From: Polymyxa betae A26-41
Taxonomy: Eukaryota; Protista; Endomyxa: Phytomyxea
NCBI GenBank assembly: GCA_003693705.1
Contig: RBZT01000423.1
Location: forward strand, 1 to 64,000
Length of the DNA: 64,000 nucleotides
Reading direction: 5' to 3'
A program made the translations under genes and the position numbers. A model generated the notes under the pieces. It made no database searches. It had not been told where the DNA came from and saw nothing but the letters and a program-made list of their open reading frames with translations. Below, piece by piece: positions 55,034 through 57,053 of this stretch (position 1 is the first letter of the stretch; the number at the start of each line of letters is the position of its first letter).

Positions 55034-56524
55034 TTAAGCGCAAAGAGCGACGATACTCATGTGCTTGACAGTACCGAAGCATGGGTCGCCAAAGACGTCA
55101 TTTTCAGCGCGAACAGAGCAGGATGTCTGTCCAACACAGCTGCTGGAGACGACACCATCGGAGCTCGAAGCATCACACCAACCATCCTGGAAGTTGGGGA
55201 AGCTTCCACCTGGCATACCGTATGAGGCGAACTGAATCTGGGTCATTGTCTTGCCATCAGGGCAAACCAGGTTCATGGTCTGGTGTTCGCCAACGGTTCC
55301 ACCGATCTGAACTGGCTGGGGACGAGCCTGGCATTTACCATTGTCACTGCATTCTTGGCCATTGTCACAGTCGGAAGAGGTCAAGCATCGGTAGCATCCT
55401 GGAGCACCAATGTGGCAGAGATCGTGAACAGACATGCCTTCGACGTGATCGTTCACGTATTGGATTGCAGCCTCGACAGCGTTCATATCATCAACACGGT
55501 TTTGAGATTGAGATTGGAACTCGGTGTTCTCGTTAGCGACTTCAGCGTCCAAGGCGGCGATCGCATCCTTGGTAGCTTGTTCGCTGGCCTGCAGATTAGC
55601 GAGGTTCTCCTGGGCCTGAGCCAACTGGTTCTGAGCATCAGCGATCTGGCCGTTTACGTCAGCAAAGTGGGCCAGATCAGCGTCTCGCTGAGCCTCGAAG
55701 TCGCTGATCAACTTGGAGTAGCTTTCGGAGGTCTGGTTGAACTGTTCCACTTCAGCCTGAGCTTCTTGCACGTAAAGGGCTCGCGATTGTTGAGTGCCAT
55801 CCTTAATCTGGTTCAGCAAGTTAAGCAGCTTCTGCTTAATGTCATTCTTGGGGCCTTTCTTCTCGATCAGCTGGATAGTGGACTCAACCAATAGGGCGAT
55901 ACGAGAGTGCTTGCGGTGCAAGAAGTGGTGGCGCTGCTTGTTCAGGAGAGCCAGAGCTTCGTTGAACTGGAAGTTGGAAACCATGTCGATCAGCTGTTGG
56001 AGAATAGCCAGAGAGTCGTCGTGGCGCTGGATGATGTCAGCGTAACGAGCAACGTTGGCTTGATGGTCCAGGTTTAGACGATCTAACATGGCCCCGTACA
56101 GCTTGGCCTGAGAGTCGGCCTCGTTCGCTTCAGCTTGGGCTTCATTAGCTTCACCTTGCAGCTCGGCGATGGCGCCGGTGATCTGGTTGATGGTGTTCTC
56201 GGTGTCCTGGATCTGGCCTTGAACCGAAGTCAGAGTGTCAACAAGGTTGGAGCGCTGTTCGGCCTTGGTGGAAACGAAAGTGTTGTGGGCTTCAACGGCG
56301 CCATTCTGTTCAGTTCGCAGCTCGGTCAATAAATCATTGAGCTGGTCGATAATCTGAGATTTGGGATCGGATAGAGAGACCAGCTGCATGGCCTCATGGT
56401 TGGACAATCCATAACGGGATGCGATCTCGTGCACAGATGACTTCAGATCTTTACTCAGGGCGACTTGAGGCGACGCCAATGTTGTGGCGGCCAGAGCGCA
56501 GAACAGGGCCAAACGGAAAGCCAT
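55034..56524 (-). CDS. secreted trichocyst-matrix/granule-lattice-like coiled-coil protein with C-terminal SUEL (Gal/Rha-binding) lectin
   Basis: Intronless ORF. Signal peptide MAFRLALFCALAATTLA, two coiled-coil halves, a Cys-rich linker, then LVCPDGK..IQFASYG.P.G...C...C.GQTSCSVRAENDVFGDPCFGTVKHM. Confidence 0.9.
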   Translation of the reverse strand: MAFRLALFCALAATTLASPQVALSKDLKSSVHEIASRYGLSNHEAMQLVSLSDPKSQIIDQLNDLLTELRTEQNGAVEAHNTFVSTKAEQRSNLVDTLTSVQGQIQDTENTINQITGAIAELQGEANEAQAEANEADSQAKLYGAMLDRLNLDHQANVARYADIIQRHDDSLAILQQLIDMVSNFQFNEALALLNKQRHHFLHRKHSRIALLVESTIQLIEKKGPKNDIKQKLLNLLNQIKDGTQQSRALYVQEAQAEVEQFNQTSESYSKLISDFEAQRDADLAHFADVNGQIADAQNQLAQAQENLANLQASEQATKDAIAALDAEVANENTEFQSQSQNRVDDMNAVEAAIQYVNDHVEGMSVHDLCHIGAPGCYRCLTSSDCDNGQECSDNGKCQARPQPVQIGGTVGEHQTMNLVCPDGKTMTQIQFASYGMPGGSFPNFQDGWCDASSSDGVVSSSCVGQTSCSVRAENDVFGDPCFGTVKHMSIVALCA

Positions 56525-56589: not shown

Positions 56590-56645
56590 ACCCTGGGTAC
56601 GATCGTCAGACTTTTTCACCCTGGGTACGATCGTCCGACTTTTTC
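56590..56645. repeat. 28-bp tandem direct repeat (x2) upstream of the 55034-56524 gene
   Basis: accctgggtacgatcgtc(a/c)gactttttc twice, one mismatch. Confidence 0.9.
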
Positions 56646-57053
56646 AAAATAATCGATCGACATGGTGGATCGGGTACAGTGATGCAGATCAGAAACTACA
56701 TTTAGTACTGCCATGAACGTACAGGAGATGACGTTGGTCTATGACTCTGCAGATATTGCTGATCGCTGTCAAATAACAATAGGCAGACCTTGATGCCGTT
56801 AAGAGAGGTATCATTATTAATATGCGTGTGAACGGTGAAGGCTGCTTATACCGCCCATCTATCAACTAAATAATGAAGAGGACGTAGAAAAAATGAAAAG
56901 AAAAACTAATGAAAGAAGTCTGTAGCAGAATGACATGTTGAGTTAACGTCATCACTATCTATTCATGTGGAATATACTGCCCCAAGCTATATGTTTTGTG
57001 GTTTCATTCGGTCGCAAACAAACAAAACCGCGTTTAATTCGAAAAGACAGTTA

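Follow-up and report, generated by a model that had tools for sequence, protein, structure and literature searches.

A putative trichocyst-matrix-type protein with a C-terminal SUEL lectin in the plasmodiophorid Polymyxa betae

The window analysed here is a stretch of 64,000 nucleotides from the genome of Polymyxa betae A26-41 (assembly GCA_003693705.1, contig RBZT01000423.1, positions 1 to 64,000). On its reverse strand, at 55034..56524, lies a gene whose product is best supported, on profile evidence, as a plasmodiophorid member of the trichocyst matrix protein/granule lattice (TMP/Grl; PF27870) family, with a six-cysteine knot and a SUEL-type lectin domain added at the C-terminal end. The helical part of this protein, hereafter the N-module (aa 19-365, with the leader, the knot and the lectin excluded), has a computed mass of 38.5 kDa and an isoelectric point (pI) of 4.69, within a full protein of 52 kDa. 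An earlier, sequence-only reading of this DNA had proposed a trichocyst-matrix-like protein fused to a sugar-binding lectin. The elements that it listed (a leader, two helical units, a basic/His spacer, a Cys knot and a SUEL domain) are all found in the translation where it had placed them, and its central claim, a likeness to TMP/Grl proteins beyond that of generic coiled coils, is borne out by profile-profile comparison, by reciprocal search, and by controls with shuffled sequences and unrelated coiled coils.

Probable homology of the helical module to ciliate matrix proteins

An exhaustive HMMER search with a five-sequence plasmodiophorid profile against 1.8 billion representatives returned, besides generic coiled coils matched in multiple stretches, a distinct class of proteins of 338-400 aa in which a single co-linear match spans nearly the whole profile. 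Five proteins of this ciliate-type class have named ciliate sources, Climacostomum virens and Pseudomicrothorax dubius, and P. dubius is a classic bearer of trichocysts. In the annotated database, a precomputed PF27870 match is attached to all ciliate-type proteins that the search returned, and PF27870 is labelled "Trichocyst matrix protein T1-F" in the ESM Atlas. When the window N-module was placed in that same atlas, three ciliate TMP clusters came out on top (0.89, 206/256 features); placing the Climacostomum protein there gave a corresponding score of 0.97. Profile-profile alignment by hhalign of the five plasmodiophorid N-modules against 20 ciliate-type proteins gave a probability of 99.8% and an E value of 1.2e-27 over 309 co-linear columns. 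The relationship holds in the opposite direction as well. A profile built from ciliate-type sequences only, run against the 27-Mb genome in six frames, retrieved the window gene first (E 9e-27, model 8-358/368), followed by its paralogs C256 (9e-24), C45 (9e-20) and C966 (5e-6), with nothing further below E 0.2; the other coiled-coil proteins of the genome are absent from this result.

Two models were used for scoring, the 20-sequence ciliate-type profile and a hidden Markov model (HMM) built from the five proteins of identified ciliates only. The scores were as follows.

Window protein: 96.5 bits with the 20-sequence profile; 59 bits with the named-ciliate HMM, in one domain (model 41-351/361)
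P0002, a plasmodiophorid orthologue: 120.6 bits; 101 bits
Paralog C256: 86.5 bits; 50 bits
Paralog C45: 72.7 bits; 46 bits
Generic long coiled coils from the same match list: 5 to 46 bits (P0005 46, P0006 36); -13 to +10 bits
Window protein, reversed: 4.9 bits; no match
Window protein, 300 residue shuffles: <=1.2 bits with the 20-sequence profile
Window protein, heptad-block shuffles: <=20.9 bits (n=300); <=18.7 bits (n=500)

These numbers bear directly on a sceptical alternative, namely that the TMP likeness is an artefact of coiled-coil composition and that the N-terminal part is a lineage-specific helical spacer. A local Pfam scan of the N-module indeed returned coiled-coil families only, all of them sub-threshold, and certain long coiled coils of generic type score 36-46 bits against the 20-sequence profile. 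The latter scores are sums over many stretches, and with the named-ciliate HMM the same class of proteins does not exceed 10 bits, whereas the window protein retains 59 bits in one global domain. Likewise, the reversed, shuffled and heptad-block-shuffled controls all stay at or below 21 bits against the 96.5 bits of the native sequence, and the genome-wide reciprocal search retrieves family members only. Shape comparison gives the sceptic some ground too: Foldseek searches of the PDB, like the search by shape in the ESM Atlas, return generic antiparallel coiled coils only (the MCP signalling domain, MukB/SMC/Rad50 and the dynein stalk), a result to be read in light of the fact that, to our knowledge, no TMP structure exists for such searches to find. 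Of the grounds on which the sequence-only reading would have fallen, neither a likeness no greater than that of generic coiled coils nor an absence of internal two-unit homology materialised. The combined alignment, in turn, displays landmarks common to both groups: (S/G)-P-x-(D/K)...L..L where helix 1 begins, (E/R)H.D(A/S)(I/L) ahead of the loop, a block resembling PKNDIKQKLLNLLNQIKDG..S where helix 2 begins, and, where helix 2 ends, YNSETEERN in plasmodiophorid P0002 vs YESETERRA in Climacostomum. Judged on these comparisons, homology of the N-module to the TMP/Grl family is very probably real, while the composition artefact appears largely refuted and is very unlikely to account for the likeness.

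Protein layout and the predicted hairpin

The gene and its parts are laid out as follows.

55034..56524, reverse strand: complete intronless coding sequence of 496 codons plus a TAA stop (ATG at 56524, stop at 55034-55036)
56471..56524, reverse strand: signal peptide, aa 1-18, MAFRLALFCALAATTLAS, with basic R4, the hydrophobic core LALFCALAATTLA and small residues ahead of the predicted cut
56363..56470, reverse strand: pre-helix region, aa 19-54, a possible pro-region, with low predicted local distance difference test (pLDDT) scores
55976..56362, reverse strand: long helix 1, aa 55-183, first half of the TMP-type domain, 14.2 kDa, pI 4.3
55847..55975, reverse strand: hairpin turn and loop, aa 184-226, aligning with the loop of ciliate TMP-type proteins
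55901-55939, reverse strand: basic/His spacer KQRHHFLHRKHSR, aa 196-208, inside the hairpin loop
55445..55846, reverse strand: long helix 2, aa 227-360, second half of the TMP-type domain, related to helix 1, 14.9 kDa, pI 4.1
55331..55417, reverse strand: six-cysteine knot, aa 370-398 (29 residues), C-x6-C-x2-CL-x4-C-x5-C-x5-C
55271..55330, reverse strand: short Pro-rich linker (RPQPVQ), aa 399-418
55040..55270, reverse strand: SUEL-type (D-galactoside/L-rhamnose-binding) lectin domain, aa 419-495, with ASYGM, GDPCFGTVKHM and six Cys
56593..56646, no strand assigned: two tandem 26-28-bp copies of CTGGGTACGATCGTC[A/C]GACTTTTTCA, 70-120 bp upstream of the ATG

The reading frame is open throughout and intact, and introns need not be invoked. 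The coding sequence has a GC content of 53% (62% at third codon positions, GC3) and lies in a window of 40% GC. Its leader, read directly from the sequence as a signal peptide, lines up with the leaders of the paralogs and of the ciliate members, and by this evidence is a secretion signal that directs the protein into the secretory pathway. The stretch that follows bears a motif, LS.D...S...IA.R(F/Y)G(L)S..EA..LV.LS.PK, kept among the plasmodiophorid members. Ahead of the gene, the tandem element encloses a palindromic ACGATCGT core and, in a genome-wide pattern search allowing <=3 mismatches, occurs only in these two copies; it is a possible, candidate promoter element.

AlphaFold2 models two long helices, at residues 55-183 and 227-360, with pLDDT >90 in their cores. 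Residues ~45-367 form one global TMP-type domain, predicted to be a ~19-nm antiparallel hairpin of two acidic helices. Helix 1 bears IIDQLNDLLTELRTEQ near its start (aa 58-73), helix 2 opens with IKQKLLNLLNQIKD (aa 229-242), and VEAAIQYV marks its end (aa 350-357). The sequence-only reading had called the second helix a homologous repeat of the first. At the level of single sequences this is weak: BLASTP of one helix against the other gives E 0.003 and 26% identity over 62 aa, and not in the register that had been proposed. The claim stands at the level of family profiles, where hhalign aligns the halves in register with a probability of 98.2%, E 4e-14 and a score of 77, compared with scores of 30-35 and E of about 1e-5 for reversed controls. 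By this comparison the two helices are related through an old duplication. Such relatedness fits the classical picture of TMP precursors, which, according to work by Gautier et al. in 1996 and Madeddu et al. in 1995, reportedly yield two similar mature polypeptides.

Cysteines provide an additional view of the hairpin register. In the combined alignment, nine ciliate-type sequences have two Cys that occur together and correspond to residues 87 and 329 of the window protein. The Cys pair of paralogs C256 and C45 corresponds to residues 73 and 343, a displacement of 14 residues that leaves the register unchanged. The sum is 416 for either pair, as befits facing residues in a single antiparallel hairpin. 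The pair is found in about half of the ciliate-type sequences examined, and is not strictly family-defining. A PDB sequence search with the combined family profile yielded partial short coiled-coil matches only (<=33 bits). A ClyA/HBL-type alpha-helical pore-forming toxin was also considered, for faint matches on some ciliate-type relatives, and rejected: PF05791 is absent at E up to 1, and the trace consists of a 17.5-bit partial match to the NHE component 6ezv, among other generic coiled coils.

Set beside the ciliate proteins (Paramecium T1/T2/T4 and Tetrahymena Grl), the window protein shares the signal peptide and an acidic domain, ~340-370 residues in length, in which a loop joins two long helical halves that are related to each other. 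Published TMP precursors of 40-45 kDa are converted to polypeptides of 15-20 kDa with pI 4.7-5.5, and a scuticociliate TMP T4-B is reported as a relative of Tetrahymena GRL3 (bioRxiv 10.1101/607622); Grl proteins are the main cargo of mucocysts and are matured proteolytically (PMC4978903). The mass and pI of the window N-module place it in the range of these precursors, and cleavage in the basic/His loop, if it takes place, would give fragments of about 20 and 17 kDa (computed halves, 19.7 and 17.1 kDa). As in ciliates, the protein belongs to a small multigene family, which in Polymyxa includes the bare 370-aa C966, although with five genes this family is far from the about 100 of Paramecium. 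Unlike the TMP/Grl proteins of Alveolata, it sits in Rhizaria. Moreover, the window protein ends in a six-Cys knot and a lectin, a combination that no recovered ciliate-type match displays, and unlike part of the ciliate-type set it has no cross-hairpin Cys pair.

The lectin, the knot and the plasmodiophorid family

The C-terminal domain is a SUEL lectin by clear margins (PF02140, 54.6 bits vs a gathering cut-off of 31.4, E 1.5e-14, model 1-80/80). It matches all three repeats of the L-rhamnose-binding lectin in PDB entry 5h4s (E 2.5e-42 in total), over its full length and at about 40-45% identity, as well as chum salmon CSL3 (2zx0, 4e-16) and the C-terminal domain of a plant beta-galactosidase (5iaz). 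Of the conserved motifs YGR and DPC.GT.KYL, the window lectin retains Y and G of the first and D, P, C, G, T and K of the second; YGM replaces YGR and KHM replaces KYL. In the CSL3 structure, the YG and GDPC.GT.K motifs reportedly contribute the sugar-contacting residues; since these motifs are kept, the window lectin is probably active in sugar binding. Two Cys of the aligned 5h4s repeats are without counterpart among its six. Whereas rhamnose-binding lectins consist of tandem repeats, the window protein carries a single SUEL copy at the end of a coiled-coil hairpin. The knot that precedes it has no Pfam family match, the nearest being DUF7107 and Dickkopf_N at E about 0.01, in a paralog; all six of its Cys are invariant across the seven knot-bearing plasmodiophorid members.

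The sequence-only reading had suggested a look for paralog families, and such a family exists. A six-frame genome search with the window protein found three paralogs of its N-terminal 400 residues, and together with the profile searches the genome holds five members in total, which end in a SUEL domain, a beta-rich domain, the knot only, or no extra domain. C256 (L002:1432-3282, 616 aa) and C45 (L003:1429-3264, 611 aa) have the same N-module and knot, followed by a beta-rich domain of ~190 residues. This domain gives a weak, below-cut-off Pfam match to Laminin_G_3 (E 2.8e-4); its AlphaFold2 model, built from two sequences, reaches a pLDDT of 47 and is too poor to classify, and Foldseek returned nothing for it. 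The two paralogs are 54% identical and differ in GC3 (0.44 for C256 vs 0.83 for C45); contamination as the cause of such divergence was rejected for C45, the flanks of which return to 44-50% GC. C263 stops directly after the knot. C966 (G000:C966:4520-5632 = L013:2021-3133) is a bare protein of 370 aa. Its helical part contains two Cys and its GC3 is very low (0.26); it has a signal peptide and lacks both knot and lectin. The same six-frame search returned >20 further SUEL domains (at least 20 on other contigs, several in tandem: C214, C841, C872 and C536), matching the Gal-lectin enrichment described for plasmodiophorids (PMC4471660).

Outside this genome, three orthologue-type clusters have the same N-module, knot and SUEL arrangement: P0001, of metagenomic origin and 54% identical, P0002, and Plasmodiophora brassicae PBRA_002083 (CEP01477.1 / A0A0G4J1T2; SPQ93242.1), whose N-module matches the family profile at E 3e-41 and which, of the relatives with a named source, is the best match. 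In this last orthologue the SUEL region sits at the same position and, unlike that of the window protein, comprises 3, 4 or 5 tandem copies, giving 715, 815 and 915 aa in three assemblies (P0152, P0003 and P0153). The variable number could stem either from copy-number variation among isolates or from repeat collapse in assembly. PBRA_002083 is annotated only as a Gal-lectin protein. It appears in Schwelm 2015 only in a list of Gal-lectin domains (PMC4471660), and no paper found in the literature names it in its text.

A second competing explanation casts the protein as a lectin effector, secreted and soluble: the hairpin would be an oligomerising stalk as in collectins or tetranectin, and the multivalent lectin would mask, agglutinate or signal via host or microbial glycans, with neither lattice nor organelle. 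The order of signal peptide, coiled coil and C-terminal lectin does recall oligomeric lectins, and the 3-5 tandem SUEL domains of the P. brassicae orthologue could be a sign of selection for avidity. Against this, the stalk globally matches a specific granule-matrix family rather than a short generic trimerisation coil, and paralogs C966 and C263 keep the module while lacking the lectin, which argues that the module has a role of its own. An effector of this kind is thus quite unlikely.

A maximum-likelihood tree of 26 N-modules sets the eight plasmodiophorid rows apart from the eighteen ciliate-type rows with support of 97/91; the tree is unrooted and contains several long branches. C966 sits on a long branch of weak support beside the ciliate-type group. 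Recent gene transfer from a ciliate is unsupported, given that in this unrooted, long-branched tree the plasmodiophorid sequences are not nested inside any ciliate-type subgroup. Two further observations concern the breadth of the family. The ESM Atlas holds a cluster of uncharacterised 252-aa fragments, labelled Foraminifera, that is a feature-based neighbour of the window protein (0.79) and, at 0.88, of the TMP-type protein from Climacostomum; this may hint at the family in other Rhizaria. Separately, P0009, P0010, P0013, P0020 and about 20 other metagenomic matches of 630-740 aa run to about twice the normal length and align with the profile in multiple stretches, which suggests tandemly duplicated TMP domains in one polypeptide.

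A possible role in regulated secretion

How might such a protein work? By homology with ciliate TMP/Grl proteins, the acidic hairpins would pack side by side into an ordered, Ca2+-sensitive matrix within a regulated secretory organelle. Probable partners in this assembly are the four paralogs, one bare, one knot-only and two with the beta-rich C-terminal domain. Because the end of helix 2 adjoins the start of helix 1, the knot and the lectin would project from the open end of the hairpin, and a discharged matrix would present its lectins as a regular multivalent array. Release would most likely take place as the parasite encysts and meets its host, from the zoospore or the cyst, with the released matrix then gluing the parasite, or part of the Rohr/Stachel/adhesorium apparatus, to galactose- or rhamnose-bearing glycans. 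The general form of this proposal, a self-assembling, lectin-bearing cargo of a regulated secretory organelle, we regard as somewhat probable. Apicomplexan microneme adhesins, themselves lectin-bearing cargo of regulated secretory organelles, provide an analogy, in that both would bring lectin-type adhesive domains into play via triggered secretion at host contact. The analogy stops there: microneme adhesins have no sequence relationship to the window protein, are mostly membrane-anchored and form no lattices.

More specific versions of the proposal deserve correspondingly less confidence. Plasmodiophorid cysts enter the host via the Rohr/Stachel/adhesorium (PMC4815078), and attachment of Spongospora zoospores falls after treatment of roots with PNGase F or trypsin (PMC9944879). 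The latter effect is compatible with lectin-mediated attachment and is not specific evidence for it. An assignment to the Stachel or adhesorium in particular is unlikely on present grounds. Equally doubtful is the boldest version, in which the Rohr/Stachel/adhesorium would be built from the products of all five genes: the bare and knot-only subunits would make the dense projectile or its sheath, the lectin-tipped ones (SUEL, and the beta-rich C256/C45) a coat gripping host-wall glycans, and the extrusome matrices of Rhizaria and Alveolata would descend from one family predating their split.

A third alternative leaves the helical module as it is and removes the discharge. The hairpins would form a fibrous layer of the zoospore cyst wall, the resting-spore wall or the sporosorus matrix, a static component in which the lectin cross-links the parasite's own wall glycans. 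A secreted, acidic, lectin-bearing protein of a self-associating type would suit such a layer. So would the company it keeps, since at least 20 other SUEL domains are encoded in the genome, many in surface-type proteins, and an enrichment of Gal-lectin and chitin-related wall proteins has been described for plasmodiophorids (PMC4471660). The DNA of the assembly was taken from sporosori, a provenance that is silent on expression (PMC6328671). Yet all TMP/Grl members of known function are cargo of a regulated, discharging granule, and nothing in the present evidence speaks for a wall in particular. A static wall role is therefore rather improbable.

Several points weigh against the favoured reading, that of a TMP/Grl-type cargo of a secretory organelle. 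The ciliate-type set was first picked by the plasmodiophorid profile, which favours its most similar members, and efforts to retrieve proteins with curated Paramecium TMP or Tetrahymena Grl names brought back only unnamed PF27870 proteins. Formal Pfam membership is unproven, the precomputed PF27870 match of orthologue P0001 being rated "weak". The window protein has zero Cys between aa 19 and 369, just as the sequence-only reading had cautioned for its helical part, and so lacks the cross-hairpin pair; to this may be added the generic outcome of the shape searches described above. The upstream regions of the five paralogs have no common 8-10-mer. We know of no molecular description of a trichocyst-like organelle in plasmodiophorids, and the organelle-level role is a hypothesis, attractive and by now testable.

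Among the plasmodiophorids are the agents of clubroot and powdery scab, as well as the vectors of rhizomania and cereal viruses, and the Rohr/Stachel apparatus of the group has been known from microscopy for decades. In the literature searched, no report of a molecular component of the Rohr/Stachel was found, nor any paper naming both trichocyst matrix proteins and Plasmodiophora. What is new here, and supported by the sequence comparisons, is a putative TMP/Grl-type domain in Rhizaria that forms a separate, well-supported group and is fused to interchangeable glycan-binding modules. The window gene and its four paralogs thereby become specific molecular candidates for the attachment or penetration apparatus, usable for raising antibodies, for stage-specific expression studies and for glycan-binding assays. 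A rhizarian branch of the granule-matrix family would also bear on the question of a common origin of extrusomes across the lineages of stramenopiles, alveolates and Rhizaria (SAR). Finally, the joining of a lattice-forming module to interchangeable glycan-binding domains, a fusion seen in no ciliate-type relative recovered, suggests how a discharged matrix may become adhesive.

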